This document shows, piece after piece, positions 8,986 to 52,772 of a stretch of DNA of 64,000 nucleotides; the stretch's first letter is position 1, and each line of letters begins with the position of its first letter. The position numbers were made by a program, and so were the translations under genes. This stretch comes from Anthoceros angustus. Taxonomy: Eukaryota; Plantae; Anthocerotophyta. Under the pieces are notes generated by a model. The model was not told where the DNA came from and did no database searches. It saw only the letters and a program-made list of their open reading frames with translations. The stretch spans positions 1-64,000 of the forward strand of contig VJWM01000240.1 in NCBI GenBank assembly GCA_010909165.1. Reading direction: 5' to 3'.

Positions 8986-8989
8986 GCGA

Positions 8990-13700: not shown

Positions 13701-15062
13701 CTGCCTCCTCTTATTGCAAAGAACGTTGCTCGATGGTTCCTGCGTTTCTGAGGTGGATGCCGAGTTACAATGCCTCCCGTCCTTCCCCAGAGCAGGCAGA
13801 ACGTTTTCCCTGTTGATCAAGCCTGTCTCATCCTCCTTCTTACCAGGAACTGCTGCCTGCACAGTGCCAGATCCACTACAAACCAGACTCTGCTTTCGCC
13901 GCTTCCTGGATGGCAACTGCAGCTTCCCTGGTCTGTTGTTTTCAGGTGTGCTTGCGCAGACCGAAGCGGCCATCCCGCCACTCTCTTCTTGCCTGCCATG
14001 AAAAGATCCTCTCCTGGAAGCACCACTGTTTGCATTGACTAGCGAGCTCTCAAGAGCATCATGCCGGTCGATCACCTTCATTATACCCTGTGCTGGAAAA
14101 TTATAACATCCTTTCCCGTTATCTGCATCCGGAGTAGTCAGATCCAGAGCTTCCTGAGCATGTGCATAGCTCTGTGTTGCACTATTAGAGGGCGCTGCAC
14201 GTAGATCCTGAAGTAGCTCATGCACTGACCGATGATCGAAACCAAATAGGTGCAGAGCATGGGACAAATGTCTTTAAACACCAGGGGACACCTTTCTACG
14301 TTGCTGGCCAGAGTGAACAGAGGACGGAGTCTCAAGGTCTACCTCCAGGCCATCTTCAGCGGACTCTGCCTCCCTCCATCCTTGTCTGCCACTCAGCGCC
14401 TTCTTCCAGGCTGCGGTTGCTGTCTCTCCTGACCTTACACCCGGTTTCGGAAGTAACCTAAACGAGAGGAAGAATTTGAGCAGAGTTGCCCTGACATCTA
14501 TGCATCAAAATCCTTCTTGCTCACCAATTATACTTCGAAGAGAGGCCCGCGTGGCCCCTCGCAGGCCTCCATTGTAAACCAGAGTCCATGTCACTGTCGC
14601 TTAGCCTTGTAGCCTCCTGGAAAAGGATACTTGTTCCCGCCATGCGCAATTAATCAAAACAGTTTCTTCGAAGGTCTTAAGAAGCACCAGCTTCCCAAAT
14701 GAACAACCAGCGCTTGCCATAGCCACCAGCAATCTTCCCTAGGACCTGGGCAGAGCATACAGACCGGAGCATTGCTCCAGCGGTACAATTCTCCAATGCA
14801 GAGAAGCACAATTTCACCATCGGATGGCTCCATTTCTGAGCTGCAACATCTACAACTGTACAACTCGATGCCGGAAGGCGCGCGCTGTCAGCTTACATCC
14901 ATTTGCCTCCGCCAAAACTGGCGGCTGTGGCTCCGCTTCCACACACCGAGACCTGTTTGAACGAGCCCGCTCCCGCGCGAGGAGTCTCATCCCGTTCCGT
15001 GCTGTTCTCAGGACGTAAGACCCGTTCCGTTGGACTGTGGTGATCACGCAGTTGTCGAACAT
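10780..15062 (-). CDS. Host gene: N-terminal FYR (FYRN/FYRC-like) domain, long low-complexity middle exon (ORF 12270..14267) and C-terminal WD40-like region. Resembles the plant At1g26330-type family. Multi-exon, with apparent frameshifts
   Basis: FTMEACEGPRGPLFEV at 14531-14578 (FYR signature). Uninterrupted 665-aa ORF. C-terminal fragments include MLRCSTAMRCMIAPEPLVVIAAGTYGHVNCWIMDPTW, LGLPLDDR and AIIGTDDGEAYAVDVLSGRKL. A short GTGAGT...TAG intron lies at ~11765-11818. Family recalled from memory. Confidence 0.65.
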
Positions 15063-17559: not shown

Positions 17560-18150
17560 CTCTTCCTCAATCAGCTACCTCTATCCTCAATTTCATGAAC
17601 TCGCGAGCCTCTCTTACGGCACATCTGGCTGGAGTGACCGCCTGATGGATATTTCGCTTGGGCCGGTAGCCCCGCGATTGCTCCTAACGAGAGCTCCCTA
17701 GAGTTCGTTGGTTCCCAAAGGCCATCTCTCGATGAACCTCCAGCGTTAGTTGCCCTACAAGATGCCACCAAGCAAAGGCACACAGTAGCCACAAGATGAA
17801 GCCTTCCACAAGGAAAAGGTCTTGCCAAGGGTCGGGCCGTGCACCGCCCTCCTGGCCCAGAGCCTCCGATCAACCTTGTTCCCCCGTGCTCGAGTCGCTT
17901 GGCAAACGGTGGACAATCGCGCACACAATCACAACGAAAAGGTACACGACTACGACGAAGAATCGTGAGGATTGATATCGAACTGTTTACACTGCTCCCC
18001 TCTTATAGGTGGAGCAGACCTCTCGAAATGTGTGTGTCTTGAATGCAAGATGACCCTTCGGATTCCATGAAGGAATTCGTGGCTGGCAGTCCGGCCTCTT
18101 GACCCCACAGGATAAGGTCCAGCTTACTACTGCCATATTTTCCCGGGTCA
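17560..18150 (-). pseudogene. Orphan ORF (~200 aa, frameshifted) near the downstream end of the TGTGG element
   Basis: Stitched frames read SCGVKRPDCQPRIPSWNPKGHLAFKTHTFREVCSTYK...PFRCDCVRDCPPFAKRLEHGGTR...HGPTLGKTFSLWKA...EAREFMKL. No family recognised. Confidence 0.4.
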
Positions 18151-18539
18151 TCTAAGTCGCCCCTTCCTCCAAATAGTATTACTGACTTAAATACGGGCCC
18201 CACTCAAGTGTCAGCACTCTGCCACAAAACATTCCTACCAGTCGTCCTACGAGTCATCCTACTAGTCAAGAGGTTGTCCGCCTTCGTTTGCTCCTCCGGA
18301 CTCCCGTGACATCCTCTTCGTCTGTGTCTTCAACGGATCGTTTCGCTCCCCCTATCAAGAGGTTGTCCGCCTTCGTTTGCTCCTCCGAACTCCCATGACG
18401 TCGTCTTCTTCTGTGTCTTCAACGGATCGTTTCGCTCCCCCTGTCTCAGAGCATTCCTCTTCGGAACTTATTCTGCTTGCACCTCCTACCTCAGTTCTCC
18501 TCTCAGTTTATCCACTACCTTGGTAGGAGATGCAATCTC

Positions 18540-21500
18540 CCTTACCTCCCTCCTATCAGGAGGGAGGTAAGGGAGATTAAGAGGTAGGGGATCCCTATCA
18601 TTTCGTTTGTAGAAGGTTTTCCTTCTACCACCTCATTGGTAAGAGGTAGACCTCCTACCGCTGCCACTTTCGTAGGTGATGTCCCTACGACGTTCATCGT
18701 GAGGGTAGAAGATCGTCCTCCTCCCTCAGCACACTCGTCTGTGGGCTCAATCCTCTCTACAGTTCCTCCACTGCCTACGGGGGCTTGTTCCCCCACCTCT
18801 TGATCTCTTGCCAAGGGAGATGAGCTCTCCTTGGTCTCTCCTATACCTACCCTTTTAGGAACACTGGTAGGACTAGGCCTACCTCCCTCTTCCTTGCTTG
18901 ATACCTCTACTAAGGAAGGTTCCACCGGGGTGGTCCCGTGTACATCTTGGCTCCCCTAGTTGGCTATATCCAGCACAGCCCTTCTCTCTTTCTACCATCC
19001 TGCTACCTCGCCTTCCAAGGCCGCTACTCCTTCAAGTGTCGGAATGGTCAGATCCGTCTCCTCCTCCTCCTCATTGTATCGTTCCTCGATCGTTTTTAGG
19101 AGGTTGTTGTAATACGTGGCCACCCTGCCACTCTCTCGCTTCTACGCGTCCATGATCCTGGCTCTTAATGGGTTTACGCGCTCGCCCCACTCAGCTACAT
19201 CTGTCAACTTCATTAAAGCTACCTCCCTTTTGATCCCCGCCCTTTCTAGTTCCAAGATGAGTCTCCCAATTTCCTCTTCCTTTCGCTTGGCATCTGTCAC
19301 CAAGCGTTTCACTGTGGCTGCTGTGGCCCTAACTTGTTCGTCCCTGAGGGCCTGTATAGCCTCGAGAGTGTGACGGACCATCAACACTTCCTTCCTACAG
19401 TTCTTTGCCTCTGCTCCGTAGGCACTTGAATTGCAAGATCGTTCGATTGTTGTCATTGTTGATCCAGGAGCTCTCTGGTGATGCGAAGCTCCTCCCTAAG
19501 GCCCTTGGCAACGTTTTCCCACTTTTATTTCTTGTTCGCTAGCCCATCATATTTCCCTATGTAATACTCCTTCCACTTGTCCATCGCTAGCAATCTCTTT
19601 TGTAGGAGGTCCTTTTCATCTTCAAGGTCCAAACATGCTACTGCATCTCCTATTACCCTTGAGGTGCAAGATCCATCATTCAGGAGCCTCACAGGCTTCG
19701 AGGAAACCTGTTCTATCGCCTCCTTCCCACGGAAACTATTCCGGGCCTTACTGGCTGTCGTAGATATTGGCTCCTTTTCCCGATTCACTTCCCCTACCTT
19801 GTTTTTCAGGGTAGGGGAACGATCCTTGGTCTGATTCTTGACAGCTTCCATCTCCTCGGCCTTCTTGGCTGAACTTGCTTCCCTCTCCAAGACCTAATCT
19901 ATCATTTGCCACACATTCACCAACTTTGTGGTGATCTTGCTCTTTGACTAGGTCAAGGACAGAGTGTTGCTTCTCGGAGGTTGTCTTCAAAGCTCCCTCG
20001 AGTTTCTTCTCCACATCCTCGGTTCTCCTCTCGGTTTATCCACTACCTTGGTAGGAGATGCAATCTCTCCTCCCTCCCTATCGGGGAGGTAAGAAGATAA
20101 GATGAGGATCCCTATCATTTCGTTTGTGAAGGTTTTCCTTCTACCACCTCGTGGTAAGAGGTAGACCTCCTACCGCGCCACTTTAGGTGATGTCCCTCGG
20201 CGTTCATCGTGAGGGTAGAAGATCGTCCTCCTCCTCGGCACCTGCATGGGCTCAATCCTCTCTGATTCCTCCACGCCTCACGGGGCTTGTTCCCCCACCT
20301 CTTGATCTCTTGCCAAGGGAGATGAGCTCTCCTTGGTCTCTCCTCCTACCCTTTTAGGAACACTGGTAGGACTAGGCCTACCTCCCTCTTCCTTGCTTGA
20401 TACCTCTACTAAGGAAGGTTCCACCGGGGTGGTCCCGTGTACATCTTGGCTCCCCTAGTTGGCTATATCCAGCACAGCCCTTCTCTCTTTCTACCATCCT
20501 GCTACCTCGCCTTCCAAGGCCGCTACTCCTTCAAGTGTCGAATGGTCGGATCCGTCTCCTCCTCCTCCTCATTGTATCGTTCCTCGATCGTTTTAGGAGG
20601 TTGTTGTAATCTGTAGCCACCACCACTCTCTCGCTTCTCTGCGTCCATGATCCACAGCTCTTAATGGGTTTACGCGCTCGCCCCACTCAGCTACATCTAT
20701 CAACTTCATTAAAGCTACCTCCCTTTTGATCCCCGCCCTTTCTAGTTCCAAGATGAGTCTCCCAATTTCCTCTTCCTTTAAGCAGCATCAGCTGCGTTTT
20801 CCTTTGTAGCTGTGGCTAACTTGTCCACGAGGGCTGTATAGCCTCGAGAGTGTGACGGACCATCAACACTTCCTTCCTACAGTTCTTTGCCTCTGCTCCG
20901 TAGGCACTTGAATTGCAAGATCGTTCGATTGTTGTCATTGTTGATCCAGGAGCTCTCTGGTGATGCGAAGCTCCTCCCTAAGGCCCTTGGCGTTTTCCAC
21001 TTTTATTTCTTGTTCGCTAGCCCATCATATTTCCCTATGTAATACTCCTTCCACTTGTCCATCGCTAGCAATCTCTTTTGTAGGAGGTCCTTTTCATCTT
21101 CAAGGTCCAAACATGCTACTGCATCTCCTATTACCCTTGAGGTGCAAGATCCATCATTCAGGAGCCTCACAGGCTTCGAGGAAACCTGTTCTATCGCCTC
21201 CTTCCCACGGAAACTATTCCGGGCCTTCTTGGTATCGTAGATATTGGCTCCTTTTCTGATTCACTTCCCCTACCTTGTTTTCGGGGTGAGGCGATCCTGG
21301 TCCGATTCTTGTGACTTCCATCTCCTCGGCCTTCTTGGCTGAACTTGCTTCCCTCTCCAAGACCTAATCTATCATTTGCCACACATTCACCAACTTTGTG
21401 GTGATCTTGCTCTTTGACTAGGTCAAGGACAGAGTGTTGCTTCTCGGAGGTTGTCTTCAAAGCTCCCTCGAGTTTCTTCTCCACATCCTCCGGTTCTCAA

Positions 21501-25889: not shown

Positions 25890-27180
25890 GCGGTTTTACA
25901 GCGGGTGTTACTGGTGGCGTTGTAAGCAGGCGCAACAACGCCGTTGTAAACGAGCTTCATGGCGTTGTAAAATTGCGACATGGCGGTTCGATGCCATGTC
26001 ATTAAAGTGGTGATGTGGCGCCACATCGCCGCCACATCACCAAGTGATGACATGGCATGTTGTTGCCACATGGCCTTCATTGCCACATCATCGGTGATGA
26101 CATGGCATAATTTGATGACATGGCCCTCATTGCCACATCACCATGTGATGACGTGGTGCCATTTACAAAACCATTTACAACATCCCAATTGCAAAAGGAA
26201 TTACAACATCTAAGTTTGAGGCGTCTGTGTGGGTACAACGCGCTTTACAACGACTGTTTACAAAACCATTTACAACATCCCAATTGCAAAAGGAATTACA
26301 ACATCTAAGTTTGAGACGTCTCGGTGTGGGTACAACGCGCTTTACAACGACACAAAACCATCTACAACATCCCAATTGCAAAGCAATTACAACATCTAAG
26401 TTTGAGGCGTCTCTGTGGGTACAACGCGCTTTACAACTGTTTACAAAACCATCTACAACATCCCAATTGCAAAAGCAATTACAACATCTAAGTTTGAGAC
26501 GTCTCGGTGTGGGTACAAGCGCTTTACAACGACTTTTACAAAACCATCTACAACATCCCAATTGCAAGCAATTACAACATCTAAGTTTGAGACGTCTCGG
26601 TGCGGGTACAACGCTTTACAACGACTGTTTACAAAACCATCTACAACATCCCAATTGCAAAGCAATTACAACATCTAAGTTTGAGGCGTCTCGGTGTGGG
26701 TACAACGCTTTACGACTGTTTACAAAACCATCTACAACATCCCAATTGCAAAGCAATTACAACATCTAAGTTTGAGACGTCTCGGTGTGGGTACAACGCT
26801 TTACAAGCGCTTTACAAAACCATCTACAACATCCCAATTGCAAAAGCAATTACAACATCTAAGTTTGACGTCTCGGTGGGTACAACGCTTTACAACGACT
26901 GTTTACAAAACCATCTACAACATCCCAATTGCAAAGCAATTACAACATCTAAGTTTGAGACGTCTCGTGGGTACAACGCTTTACAACGACTGTTTACAAA
27001 ACCATCTACAACATCCCAATTGCAAAGCAATTACAACATTTAAATTACAACGCCTTTTAAGTATTATATATATATAAAGACTTTAAACAAAAATACATAT
27101 TATTAATAACACAAATATCTATTTTCAGCTTCTTTAAATGGGGCATATTTACAACAAGTGTTTTACAACGTCCTTTGTTG
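25890..27180. repeat. Left CACTA subterminal repeats, including ~10 tandem ~90-97-bp units (26160-27050)
   Basis: Unit tttacaaaaccatctacaacatcccaattgcaaagcaattacaacatctaagtttgagacgtctcggtgtgggtacaacgc. Inverted gttgtaa motifs at 25915-25975. Confidence 0.9.
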
Positions 27181-29299: not shown

Positions 29300-29830
29300 C
29301 CACACACACTGCATGTTTAGCTTGATGACCAAGAGAAACACACACTGTTTAGGCTTGAGAGACCAAAGGAGAAACATGGGCGATCAAGGCCACACAGCCA
29401 GCTTTAGGCTTGCGAGACCAAAAAGACAAACATGGGCGATCAAGGCCACACACTGCATGTTTAGGCTTGAGACCAAAAAGAAACATGGGCGATCAGGCCA
29501 CACACCGCATGTTTAGGCTTGAGAGACCAAAAAGACAGGCGATCAAGGCCACACACACTGCTTAGGCTTGAGAGACCAAAAAACACAGGCGATCAAGGCC
29601 ACACACTGCATGTTTAGCTTGAGACCAAAAAGAAACAGGCGATCGTGATCAAGGCCACACACATGTTTAGGCAGCAGACCAATAGAAAAATCTGGCGATC
29701 AAGGCCACACACTTGTGGCTTTAGGCCAGCGGACCAAAAAGAAACATCAGCATCAAGGCCACACACTTGCCTGTTCGAGCTTGAGAGACCAAAAAGAAAC
29801 ATTGGGCGGTCAAGGCCACACACACACTGG
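29300..29830. repeat. ~50-60-bp tandem repeat, ~9 copies
   Basis: Unit gcgatcaaggccacacac(tg)catgtttaggcttgagagaccaaaaagaaacatgg. Confidence 0.9.
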
Positions 29831-35600: not shown

Positions 35601-36249
35601 TCATGAAGGTAGCCTCGCACTTTCCAACGTGCTCGGTGAAGGCAGGCAAGTGTTGTCGAGCTTAAGCTAACCCACGATCATTGTTGAGGGTAGGTCCTTA
35701 TGGATCGCTCGTAGATTTAAGCGCCCAAATATCCAATATATTTTCCAAAATGTTGGTGCAAAGAGTGCAAGGCGAGTTCGTGAGCTAACCAAGTCACGTA
35801 AACATTTGCGCAAGAATGGACCTTACCTCCCACGAATGAAGTCCCGTGGAGAACCGCAAGGAGATGAAGAACGAGGAGGAGAAGGAGGGCGAGGAGGAGA
35901 AGAACAACGAGGAGGAGAAGGAGGACGAGGAGAAGGAGGAGGAGAGAAGGAGGAGAAGAAATAGCGAACAAGGAGAACCACCGTAGCCACAACCGTGAGT
36001 TGCAATCCTTTTCTTCTATGCTAGGAAATAAACTAATGAAGTAATTATGGAGCCCTTTTCTTCTATGCTAGAAAATACAATAATAAAGCAATTATATAAT
36101 ATTATCTATAGAATAATTACGATGTGGCATACTAATTGTGGTAAGTATGTTTCTCTTGTTATATTAAAGGTAGTTTAATTATTCATATGTGTAATTATGG
36201 TTGTTTTTTTATAGTTGGAAGGAGTTTATTTTGTTTGCATGTTATAACA

Positions 36250-36933
36250 AGTACGAGCGTAGGAGTGGACACATGGCTTTGCGGTGTAGGAAAACCTTTG
36301 GATGGAAAGACAGGACCGGACCCTTTATTGCACCTCCTTATCATCCAAAAGAGGGGAAGATCCAAAGTCTCATGATGCTATTGTTTTATACAAGCATCTT
36401 TTGAAAGGCGTGTACCCTAGAGAATGGGGAATGTGGGAGAAGGGACCTATTCCTATTAACAAGTCATTTCTATATTGGGGCGAAGGTGGATAGTGAAGGA
36501 GGCAACAAACCCGCCATGGGGTTGGGTTTATTTTCCATGGAGAAAATCGTAGTGAGAAAAGATAATGTGAATGGAGTTCCTTTGTTTGTGTTTGGGGTCC
36601 AAAGTATACAGGAGAATATAACAAGATAGTGAACTACAACAGTTACCGATTTCCAAGTATGCATTGACTTTCAATAGACTCCGTAAAGATGTTAATGATG
36701 GCCCAATTGAGTACCTCGATGGGCATGTTGCATATGGGAATGTGGCGGGATATATGAATAGTAGTAGTGGAAATATCGCAATCAAGCAAAATTGCATTTG
36801 GGAAGAAAGGTCGGATGGGCATGAGCTACTAAGTGGCGACCATCTTGATTGGATTTGCACTTGGGCGGTGAGGACCATTAATCTTTGGGAAGAGTTGTTT
36901 GTTGATTACAATTGGTATAACCGAACCATTTGA
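36250..36933 (+). CDS. SET-domain (lysine methyltransferase-like) protein, ~220 aa when frameshifts are corrected
   Basis: WIVKEATNP(A)MGLGLFS (motif I GxG, 36516-36533), then PLFVF.G..Y, then YLDGHVAYGNVAGYMNSS (motif III), then ICTWAVRTINLWEELFVDYNW (motif IV EELxxDY) in ORF 36664..36933. Confidence 0.8.
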
Positions 36934-37280
36934 AGCCAAAAGGAAGGCCGTGCGAAGAGTACATAGACACATTAAATTACGCGGATGGAGTGGAAGAAAT
37001 TGAAGGCAAAGTTGATGCACGAGGATGTGGAATAGTTTTTGTTGTAGGATGTAGAAGAGTTGATGTTGAGGGTCTTGTACCTTGTGTATATTGACTATAT
37101 CGCAACAAAACAATTAGTATATCTTGTCGACTTGACTTCTTAACCTTTTAGTTTTGCATGTTGTTCAATATTTCCTTAATAATAGTGGTTATACTAAAGT
37201 TATTAAATTAGAATATAATTTATTCTATATAGTACTACAATATTTTATATACTTATTTGATATTTATTTTGTGCGTGTGA

Positions 37281-40200
37281 TTGAATAATCAAATTGAAGA
37301 GGAACAAGATTTTATTGAGGTTGATGATCATTTTGAGGTTGATGAAGAACATGTCAACATTCATCCCGACGAACAAGTGACCATAGAGTTGGTGGAGGCA
37401 CTTGGTGGGGTTTCTGGCATCGCAGAAATGACTAAAGAACAGGTCGATTCCTTGCCCGAGGAATTAAAGACGATGCACACCGCAGCAACTACGCCTCTAT
37501 GGGTTGGAGCCGAGATAAGTTTATTGGCATTCATTTTATTGTTATTGAACATCCAAAGGAGGCATGGCTGGTCGGATGCATCTTTGAATTCAATTTTATC
37601 ATTACTAGGCAAATTAGGCCTCGATTGGCAACAAGTTGCCAAAAGTAGGGCTGAAATTAAAAAGATGCTTAAGGGTTTGGCCTAACATATACATCCATAC
37701 ATGCTTGTCAAGATGATTGTATGTTGTTCACAGCGAGTTTTCAATTGCTATTGCAAGATGTGTGGAAACATAGGTATCGAATTGACACGAAGAGCAGTGT
37801 GTACCGTTAAGCTACTTGATATTTTCCATTGATTCCTAGATTGAAACAAATGTTTAGATGTCCGAGCTAGCAAGTATGATGTCATGGCACGCCACAAATA
37901 AGTCTAATGATGGGATTATGCGGGTCCCATCGGATAGCTATGCATGGGAACATGTGGACAACACTTATCCGAGTTTGCTAAGGAGACGCAACATTCGATT
38001 AGGACTTGCTACGGATGGGATTAATCCCTTTGGGCACCAAAGTTCTAGGTATTCTATATGGCCTGTGCTTCTTGTCAATTATAACCTGCCTCCTTGGTTA
38101 TCTATCAAGAATGGGCATATATTGTTGTCAATGATTATTCCTGGTCCGAAGCAAGTAAAAGATGCAGATATATATTTTCAACCACTCATCGAAGAGTTGA
38201 AGGTACTGTGGGAGGAAGGTGTGGTCGTACAAGATGCTTCTATGGCTATTGGAAATGCTCAAAGACAATTTAAATTGAAGGCCTTATTGTTGTGGACGAT
38301 GCATGATTATCCAGGATATTCTTTCACTTCTAAAATGCAAACAAAAGGGAAGCGGGCATGTCCGATATGTTGGGACAAATTAGAAGCAAGAAAGTCAATG
38401 TTCACAAACAAAATGACGTATGATAAGAATTTTAGAAAATTTTACCAGAGGAACACAAGTTTAGAGTGGAAGAGCGGGATTCATTCAATGGAAAGGTGAG
38501 ATGGAAATTATTCATCCGGACTATGCACCAACTCCGGAGGATATTATGATCGAAAGCTTTAACCGAAATATGCAAAAGACAATGGTGAAGACCACAGGGT
38601 GTTACTAGCGAGCCTTCAATTTTCGGGAGCTTCCATCTGGGAGGTATGTATGCATGCATATGGGGTCTTGCAAGTATTACCCTTTTCAAGAATATTTTAA
38701 TTATATTATTGGTAGCATCGGTGGGTAGACTAATAGCTATTCATGAAGGTTAACTTTTAGTCATGCTATTTGGTGGTTGCGAGATATTGTTGATCGGACA
38801 CTTATTTGATATCATGCACATTGGAAAGAATGTAAGTCAGATTTTGGCACACATATGTGGGAATCAAGATTCCCTTGGTAGTCGTGAGATCTTGAGTATT
38901 CAAATACCAAACAAGATTGGTGGCCCCATGCGAGGCCATCGCTGGAAGGAGACAAAGAGGCCAAAACATTGTAAATGGGGTGCAAGGTAGCAAAAACTGG
39001 CGAACCAGGGGACATTTATAACGACACCACAGGTTCTTGGACATGGCAGCAAAAGAGGCGAATGTATGCTAATGCAGAGGAAAAATTGAGAACAAGGATT
39101 TGCAGTACATTACTCCTACTATGGGTCAAATTTGAGCGTTGTTTTCTAAAGGAGAGAAGAGGGAATTTGAGGTTAAAGTCTCATGATCATCACCATCATT
39201 ACGGATTTGTGGCCAATTGTCTTGAAAGGATTAATACATCATGATGTTCACAAGGCTATATGTGATCTTGCCGAGCTATTCGTGGCTTTGTTCAAAAGAA
39301 ATTGCGAAGGATGAAATTCCAGCTATGAAGGTGAAAAGTGTGGAGATCATGTGTGTGTTGGAGGGAATTTCCAACGACTTTTCGACAAGTCAAGTACATG
39401 TTGTTGTTCATCTTGTGCGGGAGGTTGAATTATGTGGACCAACTCGATATCGATGGATGTATTTCTTAGAAAGGCACATGAAAGTGTTAAAGGGACTTGT
39501 TCTGAGACCCGACGAAGGTAGCATGGCTTTAGGATACTTAGCACAAGAGATAATGTTTTATAGCTCGAGTTCTTTGGAAATACACATGAAGAGGCACCAA
39601 GAGTGTGGAAATCAAGATGATGTCACCCAATGTGGGGTGTTATTGCAAGGAATGGCAAAATTATGACCGAATGATGTGGAAATGCAACAGATGAGGAAAG
39701 TGTTAGTGGAAAACTCAGCTGTACTCAAAAATGGCGAAAAGTGTATGGGTATAGACGGCGAGCAACGTCCTTTTGCGAATGGTTGATAGATGAAGTTAAA
39801 GTAGCGGAAGAAAGGGAAATGCGGTACAAACCTATGGGTTGGATGTGGACGCAATTGTCGAGGACCTCCTCGTGTGCGATCATATAAAATGATGTGGGCA
39901 TATGGAAATCATATAAGGACTATAGATGCGAGATAGGGAAAGAATACATGTGATAGCATTATAAAACATCTATATAGCCAAGCATGTGTTTCACATCGCG
40001 GGGACACCGAACCTATTATAGCAGATTTTCCCTATCTTTGGAAAGGTGGAAAAGATTTTGGAGGTGGACTTAGGGCCGTCTAAAAAGTAAATGTGTTGAA
40101 GGTGAGATGGTTCAAGGCTCAATGGAACAAAGAGCACACGACCATCAAAACAGATACATCTCGTATGTTCATGGTTAACGATGTCATGTTATCCAATGAT

Positions 40201-40320
40201 AAGTTGGAGGATGAGCCATTTGTACTAGTATCGGAGAAAGTGGAGCAAGTCTTTTGTATGAGAATTCTAAAATGCATGGAAAATTGTGGTGGGTACAAGC
40301 GCACGTGGAAGGCATAGTAC
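37281..40320 (+). pseudogene. CACTA/EnSpm Tnp2-family transposase (Transposase_21, DUF4218-like and DUF4216-like regions), frameshifted
   Basis: IHACQDDCMLF; RNIRLGLATDGINPF...WPVLLVNYNLPPW...IIPGPKQ...DIYFQPLIEELKVLW; LLWTMHDYPG; ACPIC; VHVVVHLVREVELCGP.RYRWMYFLERHMKVLKG; LKVRWF...DEPFVL. Confidence 0.93.
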
Positions 40321-40950
40321 AAGGTGAGGCTCAAGGCAGGATAACATGAGTCAAGATGATGAGGATGCGGATATCATAGGTGAGGATGATGAAGACAATG
40401 ATAGCGTGAGCGATAATGACCAATGAGTTACATAGTAGAGTTGGAGTAATAGACTTGTTATGTGGAAAGGAGAAGGCAGGGAAGGGGAGATGATAGAGGG
40501 ATAAGGAGTGGGGAGACGATAGAGGGATAAGGAGTGGAGAGGGTGGGAGGATAGATAGGTAATTGATAGGTTGAAAAAATATTTTAAAGCTTTTCTTATA
40601 AGTATAAAAAGTATCCCAAGTCTTAAATATTTCACTTATTTAATTATAATTATGGTGAGTACAAGCGTCGTGGAAGGCGCATAGTACAAGCGTGAGGCTT
40701 CTAGTGGAAGGCGCATAGTACAACGTGAGGCTTCTAGTGGGGATAGCATGAGTGAGGATGATGAAGATGGCGATAGTATGAGCGGATGATGACCAATGAG
40801 TTACATAGTAGAGTTGGAGTAATAGACATGTTATGCGGGGCAAGGAAGGGTACAATGCGAAAGAGGTAAAGAGGGAGAGACGATGGGAGGATAGATAGAT
40901 AGTTGATATAGGTTGGTGTTCAAAAATATTTTTAGTTTTTCTTAAAACAT
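40300..40950. repeat. Two ~330-bp direct repeats downstream of Tnp2
   Basis: gtggaagg(c)gcatagtacaa...gatgaccaatgagtt(t)acatagtagagttggagtaatagac...aaaaatatttt occurs twice. Confidence 0.85.
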
Positions 40951-42330: not shown

Positions 42331-43199
42331 AGCGACCCATGAAGAGACGATGCAAAATATGGTTTAGCGGCATAGCAACAAAAGAGCGAGAGAAGGTCCC
42401 GATGCGACAACCAAAAGGCGAGGAGGGGTGGCTGATGGAAGCGAGATCATCCAAGGCTTAATGGCTCAGTACTCCTTAGTGTATTCATGGATGCTAGTTC
42501 ATATGGCTTCTCGCATCAAGAAATCACGTTACGAGTTACAATGTCCAATTTTTGGTGGAAGTTGTTTGATTAAATGACACATGAGAGGAGCGCATGTCTC
42601 TTGCGAAGGTGGTGCATGTCTCTTGCTTGAAGGTGGTGCATCTCTCTTGCGAGGGTGTTGTGGAGTCTTTGGTTGCGGCTCCGCTCATGCTTCTAACTCT
42701 TGCTATGATTTATGTGAGGCACAGCAAGTTGTGGGGAACGTGGCTTGTGTCTCTCTCTGTTTGCCCGCGGTGGCTCACGTGAATTTGTCAATGGCACTAC
42801 GCATGTGAATTTGTCAATGGCAGGCCGTGGTATGCGTGCAAGATCGCTTTGCAATGGACCTTGTATATGAGACTACGTTGTGAATTTGGTGTAAAAGCGT
42901 GCGAGGCCGATCCGGCCTTGTCATACATTTTACAACATACAAGTGCGCTTTACAGCGCTGTTGTAATTAGACTATGTTGTAAAATTCGTGGGAGGCCTAT
43001 CTTGGCCTCTCTTAAACGCTTTACAATGTAGTGAGGTTTGCAATGGATCGTGTTGTAAATTAGATTAGGTTATGCGTATGTTGTAAAACATGAGAGAGGC
43101 ACGATCGGCCGTCTCAAACATTTTACAGCGTACAATTGGGCTTTGCGGACCGTGTTGTAAAACACGGTCCGTTACAAAACAATTAATGCTTTGTCTTGG

Positions 43200-45927
43200 G
43201 AGGAGGTGGCCGTCGGAGAGAAGGCGGGAGGAGGTGATCGGACAGAGGTGTGTTTGGGTATACCTCTTCACTCCCACTTGTTGATCATTTTGGAAAGTGA
43301 TGCTCCAACAATAGGATCATCTCCGGTCCTTGTAGGATGGAGTCGGGTGAAAACTGCAGATGCATTGCGTTGTTGCGTTCGCCCCAGCTCCTCGCGGTAT
43401 ATATTCGAGCGTGCTGAGAAACCATCCTCACCGGTCGTTATATTCCTCTTCTTCATCTTCACGCTCTGCAATTGGAGAAGGGGTTGTGGAGCGTAACGAT
43501 CGAGATGTCCTCCTCTAAGGATGCGAACCCCGCCACCGAGACTCCCTAGGCCGCTGCGGCAAGCAAGGCGGCTAGGACAACGCCTCCTCTGCTGCTGCAG
43601 GGACCCGACACTGCTGCTGCGGGAAGCTGAGCCGACCAAGCGGAGCGCCCTCACAGCTGTGGCGGTCGAGGACTAGGCGAGGCCATGTCGCGGAGGACAT
43701 GGGAGGTCCTCCATTGCGGCGCTTAGCTTCCACAATTTCTCCCACGCGTGCCCCTCGCCCTGCGCAAGAGGGAGCTGGGGCCTCTGACCGTGGGCTGAGG
43801 CTATGTCTGACGGAGGAGGTGAGGCCCTCACGGCCTCGAATTTCCCTCGAGGTAACCACGATAAGGATGTGAAGATTGTGAGCCTAGGCACGTGCGCCAG
43901 CTCTCCTATCTGTGTCGATGCAAGCATCGTCGGTCATGAAGCGGATCAGTGCGTGTTACTGACTTCTTGTTCCTGGTCATGTTGTAAGTCGCCTGATGTG
44001 ACACGGGTTTTGCTTCATCTCTGCTCCTACTCCACTCGCTCTAAAGCTATCTAATTGCTTTGTGTCTTGATCAGGATCTGTCTTGAGGATTGAGGAGGAT
44101 CTTGTTCCTCCGAAGATTACATGTGCGTGAGGACTCGATGCTACGAAGGCCTCCAGTGATCCCTCCGACTCGGAGAATCCAAAGGAAGAGTCCTCAGGGG
44201 TCGGAATGATGGGATTAGGTAGCAGGCATGTAGGCTAGTTGGGGTTAGATAGGAAAGTTCGGACTCTCCTAACCCCGGACCTCGAACATGCTTCTCGCTC
44301 TTTTGAAAGAGCTTTCGTTAATATCTGCAGGGTTTTCTTGTGTAGGCACATACTCCGGTTGCTTGACTAACCTTCCGCTTGCGTTTGGGATCGTGTTTGA
44401 GCTCGGAAGTGAGATCAAGATTACATGTGCGGTGAGGACTCCGATGCTCTGAAGGCCTCCGTCCCTCCGACTCGGAGAATCCAAAGGAAGAGTCCTCCGA
44501 GACGGCCCGAGTCTGGTGGGATTAGGTAGCAGGCAGGCTAGTTGGGGTTAGATAGGAAAGTTCCACTCTCCTAACCCCGGACCTCGAACATGCTTCTCGT
44601 GCGGCTCTTTTGAAAGAGCTTTCGTTAATATATCTGCAGGGTTTTCTTGTGTAGGCACATACTCCGGTTGCTTGACTAACCTTCTGCGTTTGGGATCTGT
44701 TTGAGCTCGGAAGTGAGATCAAGATTCGAAGTGAGATGAGGAGTCAAAGTGTGAGCTCCTCTTCACTCGAGAAGGTCACGGAGGATCCTTCAACCTTAGC
44801 GACTAAGGATCTAAATACTCCTATGTGTTTTCGGTGGAATCACCTCAATGCGCCATTACACTAATGACATTTTCCGCATACAGTCCTTCAACCTCTTCCG
44901 GATCATGCGGTGACATTTCAACATTTCAACATGCCTCTACATTTCGGATGTTACGACTAACCATGCTTCGAAATCCCTCTAGATTGGTTTTTCAGCAATT
45001 CGCATACTATGTAGATTATCGGCAAGTGAAGGCCTATCGAAACTCTATACCTATTCGTCTATTAGAAATTAGCTCGTGCGGCCCTTCTGGCGCTGGATTG
45101 GCCATTTCATTAGGCCGACTTTGTCTTTGCAATGCAAGAACTCGCATATCATTGTATTACAAATCTTTATATGTAGCACACCCAATCAGGCTTGTCCTAG
45201 TGTATCTCCATTGGAATTGCGAATGCAATCCAAAAGGAAGTACACTAGGATTCCTAGATTCGCAGTTGCTATAAAATTTTTCATGTATACTCACGGCCTA
45301 GGTTGAACTCACTACTCCAGCCATGGAGTAGCGAGATTGTATACATGTCTGACGAGGCCCTTGATGAGTCGGCCAATTTTACCCCTGGTCTACCTAACAT
45401 GCATATATAGCCCTACATGCAATATCTAGAAAACGGAATTCCCATGGTTCAAGGAAGTTGCCTTCCTCGGCCCTCGAAATAGGTTTCTATCTACATGCTA
45501 CTTTTCCCAAGGACCAAGGAACATCCTTCCGAAACCCCAAGACCAAGGACTAGGTTTCTATCTACATACCATTTTCCCAAGGACCAAGGAACATCCTTGA
45601 ACCCAAGACCAAGGACTCGAAATAGGCTTCTATCTACCAAGGACCAAGGAACATCATTCGAAACCCCAAGACCAAGGACTTGAGTCTGTTCTTCCCAAAC
45701 CCCAAAGACCAAGGACTTGAGTCCTACCTATTTGAATAGATAGGACTACCGACTCAGTAGCGGACTTGAGCGGCCACCGCTTCTCGGTGACCACACCAAG
45801 TAACGTCCTCCCATCACCACTTCCTAGGACTCCCCTCTTGTGCGTGGGAAACTAGGCGAGGTAAGAGGAGCTCTCGCTCACGACATTCGGTGCAAGGAGT
45901 CCGGTGAGGTCCTCGGGTTAAACAACA
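43200..45927 (-). mobile_element. Degenerate retro-like module sharing the TATA/repeat block of the TGTGG family; second copy at ~47890-50296
   Basis: atgcatatatagcc and caaggaagttgccttcct at 45400-45470 also occur at 23320-23380. Tandem ccaaggaccaaggaac units at 45500-45720. Ends in ...ggttaaacaaca. The left end and TSD were not resolved. Confidence 0.5.
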
Positions 45928-46885
45928 TGTTCAAGCCACTTGTTGGATGAGAAGCTTGTTTCTTTGAATATGCAGTGGGTCATTGTGCTTCTCCTTCCAA
46001 GTCGAGCTCTCCAAAGCCCGAGCACAGGAGGTGTGCGGATTGGATATGGGAGTCGTGACACTGTAACCATCGGACGTTATGTGAGTAGGGAAAGCTTCGA
46101 GGCCGTTGGAGCTCAAAATCTAGCGTAGATAGACTATTCTATTCCTCACCCTTATATGTCGTGCTAAAACTTTGTGCGATAAGAAGGACATGGTTGTGGG
46201 ATGACGCGTTCATGATCTCACATCAAACTTGGGTGCAGTCAATCACATACTTGGGGAACCATATCTTGCGGATGTATGTATCCGGAGGTAGGCTACGAGG
46301 GTGGGCAAACCAAATCCCTTCATGTGGTTTTCAATAATCTCCGCACATGCTACACATGGGGAGCCTAATGAGGCGATACAACTTTACTATGCGATGTGTC
46401 GCTCGGTGTGAAGGCGGATGCCCACATCTTTGTAGCACCCTTCAAGCTTGTGCATTTTCTTTGTGGACACGGAATCTAGCGAGAAAAGTGCGGCATGATA
46501 TGTTGCATGACATTCCACCGAACTTGTTTATTGCCAATATGTGGACATCATAGCTTAATGTGGAAGAGGCAAACACGGTTTTCGATAGGTTAGCGAGAAA
46601 GGATGTCGTGACATGGGCCACGATAGTTGGGTATGCAAATCATGGGCTTGGAAGAGGCGCTTGTTCGTATGGACAAATGGAGAAGGAGGGCCTGATTGTG
46701 GGCAACCATGTTACCTTTGCTTGCCTTCCAAAGGCCTGTGCAAACGCAAGTGCCTTACAGAAGGGCAGGCAGCTGCACTCACAGATTGTGGAGAGAGGAC
46801 AGCTAGATAACACACTTGTGGGCACTTGCCTGGTGGACATGTAGGCAAAGTGTGGCAAAGTAGAAGATGCGCATCAAGTTTTTCA
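45928..46885 (+). pseudogene. PLS-class PPR gene, copy 1 (frameshifted, truncated)
   Basis: NHILRMYV, ADAHIFVA.LQACA, EEANTVFDRLARKDVVTWATIVGYANHGLG, HVTFACL, LHSQIVERG, NTLVGTCLVDM.AKCGKVEDA. Confidence 0.85.
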
Positions 46886-49800
46886 ATGCTTGAGCATTCT
46901 CGTCTTGCAAACGTGCAGTATCAGTTGCAACTTTGTTGTCCACTCGCATTTTCTCATGGCTTCAACATCCAGTCCTGCATAATTGCCACACTACATCTCT
47001 TTCACATTTCACATGGATGCAACATGCGGAAAGCCGTAGAACATCAACCTGGGCGTCCCGGATAGCGACAACCAAAGAGCGAGGAGAAGAGGGCTGGCGA
47101 TGGAAGCGAGATCGGTAGAATACCCAAGCATTTAATGGCTCCGTACTCCTTAGTGTATTCATGGATGCTAGTTCATATGGCTTCTCGCATCAAGAAATCA
47201 CGTTAAGTTACTGATGTCCAATTTTGGTGGAAGTTGTTTGACTAAATGACACATGAAGAGGCGCATGTCTCTTGCACGAAGGTGGTGCATGTCTCTTGCT
47301 TGAAGGTGGTGCATCTCTCTTGCCCGAGGGTGTTGTGGAGTCTTGGTTGCGGCCGCTCGCTTCTGCCGTTCCTAACTCTTGCTATGATTTATGTGAGAGC
47401 ACGAAAGCAAGTGGTACGACAGGGAACCGTGGCTTGTGTCTCTCTCATGCCGGTGGCTCGTGAATTTGTCAATGGCACTACGCTTACAATGTGAATTTGT
47501 CAATGGCACTGGAAGCCCGGTAGGCGTATACAACGTGCAAGATCGCTTTGCAATGGACCTTGTATATGAGACTACGTTGTGAATTTGGTGTAAACGTGCG
47601 AGGCTGATCCGGCCTTGTCATACATTTTACAACATACAAGTGCGCTTTACAGCAGCTGTTGTAAATTAGACTATGTTGTAAAATTGTGGGAGGCCTATCT
47701 TGGCCTCTCTTAAGCGTTTACAATGTACAGTGAGGTTTGCAATGGATCGTGTTGTAAATTAGATTAGGTTATGCGTATGTTGTAAAACATGAGAGAGGCG
47801 ATCCGCCGTCTCAAACATTTTACAACGTACAATTGGGCTTTACAGCGGACCGTGTTGTAAAACACGGTCCGTTGTAATTGAATGCTTTGTCTTGGGAGGA
47901 GGTGGCCGTCGGAGAGAAGCTGGGAGGAGGTGATCGGACGGAGGTGTGTTTGGGTATACCTCTTCACTCCCACTTGTTGATCATTTTGGAAAGTGATGCT
48001 CCAACAACGGATCATCTCCGGTCCTTGTAGGATGGAGTCGGGTGAAAGCTGCAGATGCATTGCGTGGTGCATTCGCCGACTCCTCGCCGGTATATATTCG
48101 AGCGTGCGGTGAGAAACCAGTCCTCACCAGTGCGTTATATTCCTCTTCTTCATCTTCACGCCTGCAATTGGAGAAGGGTTGTGGAATAACACGTCGAGAT
48201 GTCGTCCTCCTCTAAGGATGCGAACCCCGCCACCAAGAGACTCCTAGGCGCTGCGGCAAGCAAGGCGGCTAGGACAACCTCCTCTGCTGCAAGGGACCGG
48301 ACCGCTGCTGCGGGAAGCTCGAGCCGACCAAGAAAGCGGGGCGCCCTCCCGCTGCAGTCTTGAGGACTAGGCGCGAGGCCATAATCGCGGAGGACATGGG
48401 AGGTCCTCCATTGCGGCGCTTAGCTTCCACAATTTCTCCCACGCGTGCCCCTCGCCACCGCAAAGAGGGAGCTCGGGGCCTCACCGTGGGCGAGGCTATG
48501 TCTGACGGAGGAGGTGAGGCCCTCACGGCCTCGAATTTCCCTCGAGGTAACCCCGATAAGGATGTGAAGATTGTGAGCCTAGGCACGTGCACCAGCTCTC
48601 CTATCTGATCGATGCAAGCATCTTGTGCGGTCATGAAGCGGATCGAGTGCGTAGTTACTGCTTCCTGGTCATGTTGTAAGTCGCTCATGGTGACGGGTTT
48701 TGCTTCATCTCTGCTCCTACTCCCACTCGCTCTAAAGCTATCTAATTGCTTTGTGTCTTGATGGATCTCTTGAGGATTGAGGAGGATCTGTTCCTCCGAA
48801 GATTACATGTGCGGTGAGGACTCCGATGCTGAGGCCTCCAGTCCTCCGACTCGGAGAATCCAAAAGGAAGAGTCCTCCAGACCCGGCGTAACTGGGATTA
48901 GGTAGCAGGCATGTAGGCTAGTTGGGGTTAGATAGGAAAGTTCCGGACTCTCCTAACCCCGGACCTCGAACATGCTTCTCGTGCGGCTCTTTTGAAAGAG
49001 CTTTCGTTAATATATCTGCAGGGTTTTCTTGTGTAGGCACATACTCCGCTTGCTTGACTAACCTTGCTTCGTTTGGGATCTGTTTGAGCTCGAAGTGAGA
49101 TCAAGATTCGGAAGTGAGGTGAGGAGTCAAAGTGTGAGCTCCTCTTCACTCGAAGGTCACCAGAGGATCCTTCAACCTTAGCTAAGGATCTAAATACTCC
49201 TATGTGTTTTCTGGAATCACCTCAATGCGCCATTACACTAATGACATTTCGTCACGCATACGTGTCCTTCAACCTCTTCCAGATCTGCGGTGACATTTCA
49301 ACATTTCAACATGCCTCTACATTTCGGATGTTACGACTAACCATGCTTCGTGAAATCCCTCAGATTGGTTTTTCAGCAATTCGCATACTATGTAGATTAT
49401 CGGCAAGTGAAGGCCTATCGAAACTCTATACCTATTGCGTCTATTAGAAATTAGCTCGGCAGCTCAGGCGCCTGGATTGGCCATTTCATTAGGCGACTTT
49501 GTCTGCTAATATGCAAGAACTCGCATATCATTGTATTACAAATCTTTATATGTAGCACTAATCGGTAGTTGTCCTAGTGTATCTCCATTGGAATTGCGTA
49601 ACGCAATCCAAAAGGAAGTACACTAGGATTCCTAGATTCGCAGTTGCTATAAAATTTTCAACCGTATACTCCACGGCCTAGGTTGAACTCACTACTCCAC
49701 CATGGAGTAGCGAGATTATACATGTCACGGCCCTTGATGAGTCGGCCAATTTTACCCCTAGTCTACCTAACATGCATATATAGCCCTACATGCAATATCT

Positions 49801-50296: not shown

Positions 50297-51540
50297 TGTT
50301 CAAGCCGACTTGTTGGATGAGAAGCTTGTTTCTTTGAATATGCAGGTGGGTCATTATGCTTCTCCTTCCAAGTCGAGCTCTCCGGCAAAGCCTGAGCCTG
50401 GGAGGTGTGCCGGATTGGATATGGGAGTCGTGACACCTGTAACCATCAGCACGTTATGTGAGTAGGGAAAGCTTACTGAGGCCGTTAGAGCTCTGTAAAA
50501 TCTGGCATAGATAGACTATTCTATTCCTCAGTCCATCTTATATGTCATGCTAAAACTTTGTGCAGATAAGAAGGACATGGTTGTGGGATGACGCGTTCAT
50601 GATCTCACTATCAAACTTGGGTACGAGTCAATCACATACTTGGGGAACCATATCTTGCGGATGTATGTATCCGGAGGTAGGCTACGGAGGGTGGGCAAAC
50701 CAAATCCCTTCATGTGGTTTTCAATAATCTCCGCACATGCTACACATGGGGAGCCTAATGAGGCGATACAACTTTACTATGCGATGTGTCGCTCGTGTGA
50801 AGGCGGATGCCCACATCTTTGTAGCAGCCCTTCAAGCTTGTGCATTTCTTTGTGGACTGGAATCTAGCGAAAAGTGCGGCATGATATGTTGCATGCTGAC
50901 ATTCCACCGAACTTGTTTATTGCCAACTCGGTGGACATGTACGCAAACTGTGGTTGGAAGAGGCAAACACGGTTTTCGATAGGTTAGGCGTAAAGGATGT
51001 CGTGACATGGGCCCCGATAGTTGGGTATGCAAATCATGGGCTTGGCCAAGAGGCGCTTGTTCTATGGACAAATGGAGAAGGAGGGCACGATTGTGGGCAA
51101 CCATGTTACCTTTGCTTGCCTTCCAAGGCTGTGCAACGCAAGTGCCTTACGGAAGGCGGTGCACTCACAGTTGTGGAGAGAGGCTGACTAGATAACACAC
51201 TTGTGGGCACTTGCCCGTGGACATGTAGGCAAAGTGTGGCGAAGTAGAAGATGCGCATCAAGTTTTTCAATGCTTGAGCCCAAAGGATGTGGTGACTTGG
51301 AATGCCCGATTCGGGTATGGATGAAGGGCTTGGTCAAGAGGCGCTATTTTTGTATGGACGAATGCAGAGGGCCGCTTGTGGCGATGAGGTTACTTTTGCT
51401 TGCCTTTTGAAGGCATGTGCAAGCATTGGTGCCTTCTGGAAGTGTAGCACTCACACTTGTGCAAAGAGGACATTTGGATAACGTGCTTGTGGGCGCTTCG
51501 GTGGACTGTATGCCAAGATGCATGCCTCGTTTTGACTTGG
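50297..51540 (+). pseudogene. PLS-class PPR gene, copy 2 (longer, frameshifted)
   Basis: Same motifs as copy 1, plus KDVVTWNA...GLGQEA...VTFACLLKACASIGAL...NVLVGA. Confidence 0.85.
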
Positions 51541-51549
51541 CTAGGAAAA

Positions 51550-52772
51550 TTCTTACACCGACATTTTACAATGCGGCACTATTTATAAATCGATAAATTT
51601 GTATAACATTTTACAATGTATTTGCAATGAACATGCCACATCGCAATTTCACTAATATATAGCCTCATAAATGACATAAATCGGAAAAGGTCTCTTCCAC
51701 ATATTTACAACGGCATTTGCGACAAGCATGCCACATCGAATCTTACTAATATATAACCTCATAAATTACATAAATAAGGAAAAGGCATGCCACATCAATC
51801 TTACTAATATATAACCTCATAAATTACATAAATAAGGAAAAGGTCATCTCTTACTAATATATAACCTCATAAATTACATAAATAAGGAAAAGGTCTCTTC
51901 CAAAATTTACAACGGCATTTGCGACAAACATGCCACATCAAAATAATATATTTATTCATGGATATTGGCTGGCTTTGCATTTTACAACCATAGTTACGAC
52001 GCATGTGCCACGTCAAGAATATACAATAAAATGAATAATCCAATAATATAACATAAATTGGAGAAACCATTTTACAATGATATTTGCAATGAGCTTGCCA
52101 TGTCAGCAAATAATAAATTTATTTATAGATATTTATATAAAATGGTTTTCATGCGTTTTACAACCATAGCTACAATGCATGTGACACGTCAAGAATACAA
52201 AAAAAAAGATAATCCCATAACTAACATAAATCCAGAGAAACATATTTACAACATCATTTGCAACGAACTTGCCACATCAGCAAATAATAAATCTATTCAT
52301 ATATATTCCAATAAATGGTATTATTCCAAAAATCAAGTCTTGCACAATTTACAACCACATCTACAACAAACATGGTTTACAACGTCTTTTACAAGTACCG
52401 TTTACAACATCCTTTATGCCACGTCATTATAAATTCAACAAAATGTAGTTTTATTAACAAATAACCCCCATAGTTTTCTAAATCAAAAGAGTTTATGCAC
52501 AATTAACAACGTCATGTACAACGAGCAAGCCATGTCAACAAACCCCGTTGTAAAATTTGTGTCAACATGCCATGTCAACAAATCCCGTTGTAAAATTTGT
52601 GTCAACATGCCATGTCAACAAACCCCTGTAAAATCCATGCCACATCATATTAGTTAGGAACCCTTGTTGTAAATGTTCAAAAACTTACAGGCTTTGAGTC
52701 AGTAGTAAGAGTGTTGTAGTTTCCTCTAACTAAACTTAGACCCATTTGTAAAGGTAGCCCCTCCTTGTAGTG
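51550..52772. repeat. Right CACTA subterminal region: AT-rich repeats with TTTACAAC, GTTGTAAA and CATGCCACATC motifs
   Basis: atcttactaatatataacctcataaattacataaataaggaaaagg x3-4 and catgccatgtcaacaaa.cccgttgtaaaa x3. Ends in TAGTG. Confidence 0.85.

Follow-up and report, generated by a model that had tools for sequence, protein, structure and literature searches.

A divergent zinc-finger-SET gene that probably belongs to a Tnp2-type CACTA transposon lineage of land plants

A 64,000-nucleotide stretch of Anthoceros angustus (Anthocerotophyta; GenBank assembly GCA_010909165.1, contig VJWM01000240.1, positions 1 to 64,000 of the forward strand; the window in the following) carries a gene with a divergent SET domain directly upstream of a CACTA transposase gene of the Tnp2 type. 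The pair is probably one copy of a Tnp2-type CACTA/EnSpm lineage of liverwort-type land plants, in which gene 1 encodes a zinc-finger-SET protein and gene 2 the transposase. The conserved order, all on one strand, is a Transpos_assoc-like finger, a linker of ~150 residues, the divergent SET domain, a stop, and Tnp2. In the window, the sequence that is homologous to this family of small SET-like proteins lies at 36,264-37,091 (+) and the CACTA Tnp2 transposase gene at 37281-40317 (+); each of the two is single-copy within the 64 kb. Loci and proteins of relatives are given below by their numbers (L and P, respectively).

Linkage of the SET gene to the transposase

Apart from the window, seven independent loci have a SET gene followed by Tnp2 on the same strand, which makes eight loci when the window is counted; the seven stem from at least five data sets other than that of the window. 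Two of them are copies in the leafy liverwort Calypogeia fissa, five are contigs of other samples, and they were reached from the SET side and from the Tnp2 side. In the first C. fissa copy (L005), SET (10,001-10,885), Tnp2 (12,142-12,810), and DUF4218 (13,865-14,161) follow each other on one strand. The second copy (L006) takes on the same order with a zinc finger in front (zinc finger 9,153-9,305, SET 9,629-10,507, Tnp2 11,987-12,478, DUF4218 13,758-14,051), likewise on one strand, and the two copies are 80-89% identical over ~6-7 kb. At the place of the L006 zinc-finger exon, L005 harbors, on the minus strand (8,523-9,710), a 395-residue open reading frame (ORF) whose C-terminal part is kinase-like; the L005 copy seems to be cut at its 5′ side.

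A metagenome scan with a seven-member SET alignment returned a single locus (L008), which contains a finger, the SET domain, and an acidic Tnp2 N-terminus that ends in a PLYE-type motif at the contig end. The Tnp2 side led to L009, where an intact 299-residue SET ORF (22-894, cut by the contig start) precedes Tnp2, to L012 with finger, SET, and Tnp2, and to L013, which consists of a finger ORF, an intact 324-residue SET ORF with a precomputed SET match, and intact Tnp2 ORFs of 368, 334, and 321 residues. L014, which comes from another sample, is 99.8% identical to L013, and the pair is counted as one element. L011, which begins inside Tnp2, is uninformative on SET linkage.

In the organism of the window, 575 short-read contigs match a 4.7-kb section across SET and Tnp2 with 80-100% likeness. 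Their summed depth, which gives no copy number, amounts to 250-475 over SET compared to 150-520 over Tnp2. It dips to 41-93 in the spacer (37,056-37,369), which suggests that the spacer varies more among copies. The SET gene is multi-copy, and SET as well as Tnp2 is repeated in the genome.

The SET gene is under purifying selection, at a constraint no weaker than that of the transposase. Between L005 and L006, the ratio of nonsynonymous to synonymous substitution rates (dN/dS) is 0.22 for the SET domain (bootstrap 0.11-0.43) and 0.34 for the whole SET gene (bootstrap 0.23-0.52). The corresponding value of the Tnp2 core is 0.44 (bootstrap 0.25-0.73), and those of the DUF4218 region and the Tnp2 C-terminal region are 0.52 and 0.34, respectively, both given without bootstrap. 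The intact L009 and the decayed L004 yield 0.26 for SET (bootstrap 0.17-0.36), and deeper SET pairs range from 0.10 to 0.23 at saturated dS. The comparison among copies that had been proposed in the initial annotation thus gives SET values below 1, and neutral evolution is not seen. Across the six loci at which both genes are present, the pairwise identities of SET and Tnp2 correlate (Mantel r 0.74, p 0.014), a result that rests on two close pairs, window-L009 and L005-L006, whose members are mutually closest in both genes.

It had been proposed that the SET gene belongs to the transposon and that it should recur beside Tnp2 in other copies. The order in seven other loci, a depth like that of Tnp2, purifying selection, and the lack of a close host homolog among 1.84 billion representative proteins support this proposal and point to a member of the transposon lineage rather than a chance neighbor. 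One locus with Tnp2 and no SET (L010) stands beside these and is discussed further below.

The window copy and its frame shifts

The SET-gene exon (36261-37094, +) is built from an N-terminal conserved region, the SET domain, a tail of ~57 residues, and a stop, and is interrupted by six one-base shifts as assembled. The core of the divergent SET domain (36478-36918, +) is recognized by WIVKE, GLGLF, LFVFG-GPKY, YLDG, GNVAGYMNSS, NCIWEE, and RTI..EELFVDY. The initial annotation had listed the SET motifs in their usual order, and they are indeed found in that order within 36,264-37,091 (+), with MGLGLF at 36516-36533, YLDG at 36712-36723, GNVAGYMNSS at 36736-36765, and AVRTINLWEELFVDY at 36865-36909. 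The location ~350 bp upstream of Tnp2 on the same strand is likewise borne out: the SET stop as assembled (36931-36933) is 348 bp 5′ of the Tnp2 ORF start at 37281. The stop after the tail, which is read in a shifted frame as assembled, lies at 37092-37094 and is followed by an AT-rich spacer (37095-37280, +) that extends to the Tnp2 reading frame.

The description as a minimal stand-alone SET has to be given up, as the relatives add ~150 residues upstream and a CxCxxC...H zinc finger. In the window, a candidate zinc finger of the transposase-associated type is located at 35751-35840 (+), where CWCKECK (35,751-35,771) is continued in the next frame by RVRELTKSRKHLRKNGPYLP. The assignment is weak and was made by eye. 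CWCKECK is the sole CxCxxC upstream of SET on the plus strand and resembles, by eye, the fingers of L008, L001, and L013; a Pfam search with the window's frame-1 piece around it returned no match. The candidate finger is followed by a Glu/Gly-rich low-complexity tract of GAG-type repeats (35850-35960, +), and low-complexity tracts beside the finger occur in relatives too. The AT-rich stretch at 36000-36212 (+), with gtaagt near 36142 and ttttatag at ~36206-36213, is probably an intron between the finger and SET exons, as an intron is found at the same place in L013.

In the assembled sequence, the SET gene is not one ORF. The SET homology passes through frames 0, 2, 1, 0, 2, 1, 0 (position modulo 3) and thereby through three reading frames, with six shifts near 36350, 36478, 36512, 36596, 36655, and 36921. 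All six go in the same direction, each corresponds to one missing base, and each is located at a short homopolymer. No in-frame nonsense codons are present within the homologous SET segments. At 36920, the single covering short-read contig carries one extra C that brings the following 57 codons of the tail into frame, and at 37863 a short-read contig has an extra G exactly at the Tnp2 frame step. The short-read check of the locus that had been suggested accordingly yields an extra base at both shift sites that are covered by the insertions and deletions listed for the short-read contigs; 77 further ones lie outside this listing. These contigs may stem from sister copies and are not decisive for this locus.

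Shifts in one direction, their homopolymer context, and the absence of the shift at 36920 from the covering short-read contig favor assembly errors from long reads over decay, and such errors are the probable cause of the broken frames. It is doubtful, yet worth serious consideration, that this copy is instead a dead relic in which the frame shifts of SET and Tnp2 are real mutations. Such a relic would account for the six shifts in SET and several in Tnp2, for a TAG in place of the TGG expected in the MDRSW motif, and for the nested repeats and duplications that crowd the neighborhood. It is harder to reconcile with shifts that all go one way by a single missing base at homopolymers, with homologous segments free of nonsense codons, and with the extra base in short-read contigs at both listed sites, even if these may be other copies.

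Across 36,350-40,340 of the window, the frame changes at homopolymers in both genes, each time by one missing base, and several single-base differences to the short-read contigs are present. The assembly probably has systematic one-base gaps that break gene calls elsewhere, and with many such homopolymer gaps, gene calls made on it need care.

Identity of the SET domain

Judged by its sequence and a predicted structure, the domain is a real but very divergent SET domain. This assignment is derived from borderline Pfam scores in combination with top structural neighbors that are all SET enzymes. In the search with the Pfam hidden Markov model of SET (PF00856) that the initial annotation had called for, the C-terminal 89-residue piece of the window alone stays below the curated cut-off of 22.4 bits (E 1.1e-3, 19.8 bits), but P0002, an intact relative of 229 residues, passes it with 25.4 bits. 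L012 (22.1 bits) and L009 (21.9 bits) score just below the cut-off, and in an alignment of P0002 with six other proteins, all seven members match PF00856 with E up to 0.1. Among the 100 protein-atlas clusters nearest to the window's SET piece, 91 are SET families.

An AlphaFold model of P0002 residues 70-229 reached a predicted local distance difference test (pLDDT) score of 62.8 and a predicted template modeling (pTM) score of 0.63. In Foldseek, the 50 best PDB matches of this model are without exception SET lysine methyltransferases (best E 7.8e-3, template modeling (TM) score 0.39), led by LegAS4 (E 7.8e-3) and followed by G9a/GLP, MLL, SETD2, and ASH1L. VIA-align gives Z scores of 5.0-5.9 to Schizosaccharomyces pombe Set7, vSET, SET8, and EZH2. 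The fold matches point clearly toward SET, but with weak scores. Sequence profile searches of the PDB returned nothing for the seven-member alignment and only marginal SET matches for a ten-sequence alignment (E 0.4-0.8). An earlier model of the whole P0002 from a shallow alignment was unusable (pLDDT 38.9).

In the ten-sequence family alignment, WxxxW(I/V)V, GLGLF, L(F)P(F)xGxxY, DG, GNxxGYINS, N(A)xW, and TxAxRTIxxGxE...Y are fully or almost fully conserved. Of the cofactor and catalytic motifs expected of SET domains (GxG, NH(S/C)xxPN, and the Tyr of ELxF/YDY), GLGLF, the Asn, the N(A/V)xW stretch, and the final Tyr show little or no variation across the family. Where the canonical NHS motif has a His, Ser is found in all ten sequences of the alignment as well as in the window, P0001, and P0004. 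The replacement of NHS by NSS, which had been remarked on for the window, is therefore borne out and is a trait of the family, as every member has the Ser. In well-studied SET enzymes, the loss of the NHS His abolishes activity.

This raises the alternative that the SET-like domain persists but no longer methylates, and that it instead binds or scaffolds a partner such as a histone tail, the transposase, or a host silencing factor; we regard this as somewhat unlikely. The Ser in every member across ~30% sequence identity and the weak scores against SET models are compatible with such a role, and purifying selection shows function, not catalysis. However, GxG, the Asn, the PN/NA..W stretch, and the final Tyr of the ..DY motif vary little or not at all, and these positions are generally known as the cofactor-pocket and catalytic sites of active SET enzymes.

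Gene structure: separate protein or fusion

A finger is located upstream of SET in L001, L003, L006, L008, L012, and L013, where that of L013 was read by eye only. For the others, the best Pfam match is Transpos_assoc (PF13963), which remains below threshold in each case (E 2e-4 in L003, 5e-4 in L008, 1e-2 in L006, 5e-2 in L012, and 9e-2 in L001). In plant Tnp2 transposases, the Transpos_assoc domain is ordinarily found at the N-terminus. L013 has a clean GT-AG intron of 130 nt (546-675) whose removal brings finger and SET into one frame, in L012 finger and SET share one frame across an intron-like stretch, and in L001 the finger runs on into SET with one shift.

SET is followed by a stop in all ten of the relatives' loci. 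The stop is mostly TGA in a context other than a splice donor, and a conserved donor is absent. In five sequences that are only 54-66% identical, the stop is placed at the same position straight after the domain. With a stop after SET in every one of the ten loci, a separate finger-SET protein is favored over a SET-Tnp2 fusion, as far as gene structure can be read from sequence.

A fusion would require that SET is an exon of the transposase gene and that splicing generates a single finger-SET-Tnp2 protein, an element-borne counterpart of SETMAR. This is improbable, even though the shared strand, the short AT-rich spacer, and the window's Tnp2 frame, which opens without an early ATG, would suit it, as would the finger that normally heads the transposase and is here found upstream of SET. 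In L013, moreover, a GAG/GTAG donor (the slash marks the splice junction) overlaps the stop, and two weak acceptors upstream of Tnp2 would give an in-frame join with it. In-frame joins are, however, expected by chance with so many GT/AG pairs (13 found), and the L013 Tnp2 ORF has its own ATG. The stop in ten of ten loci, mostly TGA in a nondonor context, and its constant position at 54-66% identity further speak against a fusion. SET and transposase do not share one reading frame, either in the ten relatives' loci or in the window (stop at 37092-37094); splicing from a donor further upstream could still connect them. The Tnp2 frame of L013 opens exactly at a strong acceptor (TTATAG/AAC, 1,875), in the same phase as the donor of the finger exon.

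Relatives and origin of the SET gene

A phmmer search with the 89-residue SET piece against 1.84 billion representative proteins gave three true relatives, all of which are unnamed ORFs on short Logan contigs; annotated host SET proteins were not found among these representatives at E ≤1e-3. A search for short homologs of the 89-residue piece found none. P0002 as a query led to six further proteins with 57-70% identity to it, two of which are listed as “unnamed protein product” of C. fissa. Since the search of 1.84 billion representatives yielded only three relatives, all of them contig ORFs, the SET gene is not a recent copy of a host gene.

Intact SET ORFs are present in L013, L009, P0002, and P0009; decayed copies with stops and shifts are found in L001, L004, and L008. 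The SET copy of L004 (1-900) has many in-frame stops and a T-rich decay of the C-to-T type, and its protein is 79% identical to that of the intact L009. That SET is merely a host gene fragment, picked up by one element through transduplication of the Pack type and carried without function, is highly improbable and largely refuted by these data: the capture of host gene pieces is generally known to be frequent in plant DNA transposons and some copies are decayed (L001, L004, L008), but dN/dS values of 0.1-0.34 with bootstrap limits below 1, a position and orientation kept between lineages whose SETs are only ~32% identical, the absence of a near host protein among the 1.84 billion, and the four intact ORFs contradict it.

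Observations that weigh against the assignment

Several observations weigh against the assignment of the window to a transposon lineage with a zinc-finger-SET gene. With regard to linkage, L010 has a finger directly before Tnp2 and no SET, and in L006 a second Tnp2 is found for which no SET was detected in the ~700 bp between the end of the neighboring element and the Tnp2 start; L006 also holds a lone SET. Beyond the two close pairs, the distances of SET and Tnp2 are uncorrelated (Spearman 0.26). With regard to the domain, the SET scores are borderline throughout (Pfam 19.8-25.4 bits against a cut-off of 22.4, Foldseek 7.8e-3, VIA Z below 6, PDB profiles E at least 0.4), and the NHS His is absent family-wide. 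The zinc finger of the window was read by eye and across a frame shift. CACTA termini (CACTA...TAGTG) and 3-bp target-site duplications were not found for the window copy or for L005/L006; the terminus searches for the window copy comprised CACTA-seeded pairs, the terminus at 52,772, short-word BLAST between the flanks, and 9-mer matching, and a failure to locate the ends is no proof that they are absent. Finally, no RNA run was listed with the stretch, and a transcript of it was not found in the organism's one RNA run.

The SET-less L010 arrangement spans 73-1,152, its Tnp2 is 63% identical to that of the window, and its sample also yielded L001 and L009. It represents either a sister family without SET, a derivative that arose by deletion, or a spliced form. 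In L006, the lone SET (4,675-5,232) is of a third lineage and 37% identical to P0009, and the separate Tnp2 (17,296-19,439) is 46% identical to that of the window and 62% to that of L013. Both flank the complete SET-Tnp2 copy of this locus and may be one element that was split by the insertion of another.

Proposed function

In the preferred reading of a two-gene element, the finger-SET protein would be an accessory factor encoded by the element itself and would take the place that TnpA has in maize En/Spm. The finger, which forms the N-terminus of the transposase in ordinary CACTA elements, could bring a lysine-methyltransferase-like module to the DNA or chromatin of the element or to the transposase, and the module placed in this way may tune silencing or transposition. 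The splice phases of L013 further suggest the idea that alternative splicing connects one and the same finger exon either to the SET exon or to the Tnp2 exons. The chromatin writer that had been proposed initially, which would modulate the silencing of the element or of the host, is a plausible but hypothetical role.

In a more specific form of this proposal, the zinc-finger-SET enzyme would stand in for the customary DNA-binding accessory protein, would be directed to the subterminal repeats of its own element, and would write or block a histone lysine mark there, with the finger exon shared by splicing. This form is speculative and rather unlikely as a whole. If true, it would let the transposon set its own chromatin state and would be the first self-targeting histone writer in a land-plant transposon.

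The transposase and the limits of the element

The transposase gene of the window (37281-40317, +) is identified by Pfam and has several frame breaks as assembled. It starts with an acidic N-terminus and PLWVG region (37281-37685, +), followed by Transposase_21 (PF02992, 37858-38496, +, E 1.8e-59) and DUF4218 (PF13960, 39241-39663, +, E 5.6e-20). The DUF4216-like end (40093-40314, +) finds homologs in the C-terminal pieces of the L009 and L011 transposases, and the corresponding stretch in L013 is DUF4216. The window Tnp2 is colinear with the intact exons of L013, with frame steps 3, 2, 1 at ~37680 and ~37861. The acidic C-terminal end of Tnp2 and its 3′ flank are duplicated locally, ~420 bp apart (40,345-40,460 and 40,770-40,870).

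Clusters of the TTTGCAAC/GTTGTAAA motif are found at 34.9-35.3 kb and 42.8-43.2 kb. In L013, the same TCCGATA/TATCGGA motif is present at both contig ends and flanks both genes, which fits a SET gene inside the element. For the window itself, the initial placement of the gene within subterminal-repeat boundaries could not be confirmed, as the CACTA termini were not located, and Pfam searches of the other large ORFs in the window gave nothing that delimits the element.

A canonical CACTA end (TTGTAGTG) is located at 52,765-52,772, after ~1.2 kb of TTTACAAC/GTTGTAAA subterminal repeats (51,500-52,772). A 5′ end that matches this terminus was not found within the window, and it may be the end of another or of a larger CACTA element. 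Further downstream of Tnp2, 42,835-47,530 and 47,534-~50,000 form a tandem duplication of ~4.4-4.7 kb, in which the repeat families D1, D2, D4, D8, D9, and D11 recur at a spacing of 4,373-4,699 with 92-100% identity. Tandem arrays are present at 26,162-27,043 (91 bp x 9.6, TTTACAAC-rich) and 29,338-29,825 (55 bp x 9, GGCCACACAC motif). An ORF on the minus strand (8,143-8,697) with an endonuclease/reverse-transcriptase domain (PF14529, E 1.8e-18) marks a retroelement fragment of the long interspersed nuclear element (LINE) type.

Comparison with known systems

Plants silence transposons mainly via DNA and histone methylation. To our knowledge, few transposons have chromatin tools of their own, namely VANDAL with VANC, Spm with TnpA, fungal elements with TET/JBP, and HarbingerS, MuDR, and Plavaka with SET. 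Bryophyte transposons are reported to be marked partly by trimethylation of histone H3 lysine 27 (H3K27me3) rather than by dimethylation of lysine 9 (H3K9me2) (bioRxiv 10.1101/2022.10.24.513474), which would make an element-encoded lysine methyltransferase a testable player in the conflict of host and transposon. A conserved and selected zinc-finger-SET gene in an ordinary Tnp2-type bryophyte CACTA would add a land-plant case.

The initial annotation knew of no CACTA family with a SET gene of its own. This stands for the Tnp2-type CACTA of land plants, for which no description of a SET gene was found in the full-text literature searched (Repbase itself was outside this search), but SET genes as such have been published in HarbingerS, MuDR, Helitrons, and Plavaka. 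HarbingerS and Phytophthora MuDR families encode a SET histone-methyltransferase gene (Kojima and Jurka 2014, Repbase Reports, as cited in PMC12730594). They share with the window a SET gene beside the transposase as a family trait of a cut-and-paste DNA transposon. They differ in their PIF/Harbinger or MuDR transposases and in their hosts, whereas here the transposase is of the Tnp2-type CACTA and SET has a transposase-associated zinc finger as its partner and no NHS His. In the red alga Bostrychia moritziana, Plavaka accessory gene 2 (PAG2) contains a SET domain (PF00856; bioRxiv 10.1101/2025.02.11.637652), so that Plavaka, which belongs to the EnSpm/CACTA superfamily in the broad sense, has a SET accessory gene. 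PAG2, however, combines a DNA methylase (PF01555) with SET and resides in giant Plavaka elements of 17-19 kb that have two further accessory genes. In the lineage described here, a DNA methylase is absent, the partner is a zinc finger, and the transposase is of the plant Tnp2 type with DUF4218 and DUF4216.

TnpA of maize En/Spm and VANC of Arabidopsis VANDAL are element-encoded factors that counter silencing. The finger-SET protein resembles them as a second element-encoded protein of a plant DNA transposon and a candidate actor on its own chromatin. It has no sequence or domain relation to them, they are not SET-type enzymes, and the likeness in function is one that we infer.

SETMAR likewise encodes a SET domain and a transposase adjacently on one strand. 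It is, however, a single-copy primate host gene that captured a dead mariner transposase, whereas here the pair is found in a multi-copy element and all relatives' loci examined have a stop between SET and transposase. Chlorovirus vSET and S. pombe Set7 have a short SET core without pre-SET and post-SET cysteine clusters as well, and rank with Z 5.8-5.9 among the structural neighbors closest to the model. They differ by a sequence identity of only ~20-24% and by the long N-terminal extension with a zinc finger that is present here, and both keep the NHS His. Compared to these systems, the other superfamily and host group, the zinc-finger partner, and the family-wide loss of the NHS His are new, and the replacement of this His by Ser in the whole family is a natural test of what a SET domain is capable of without that residue.

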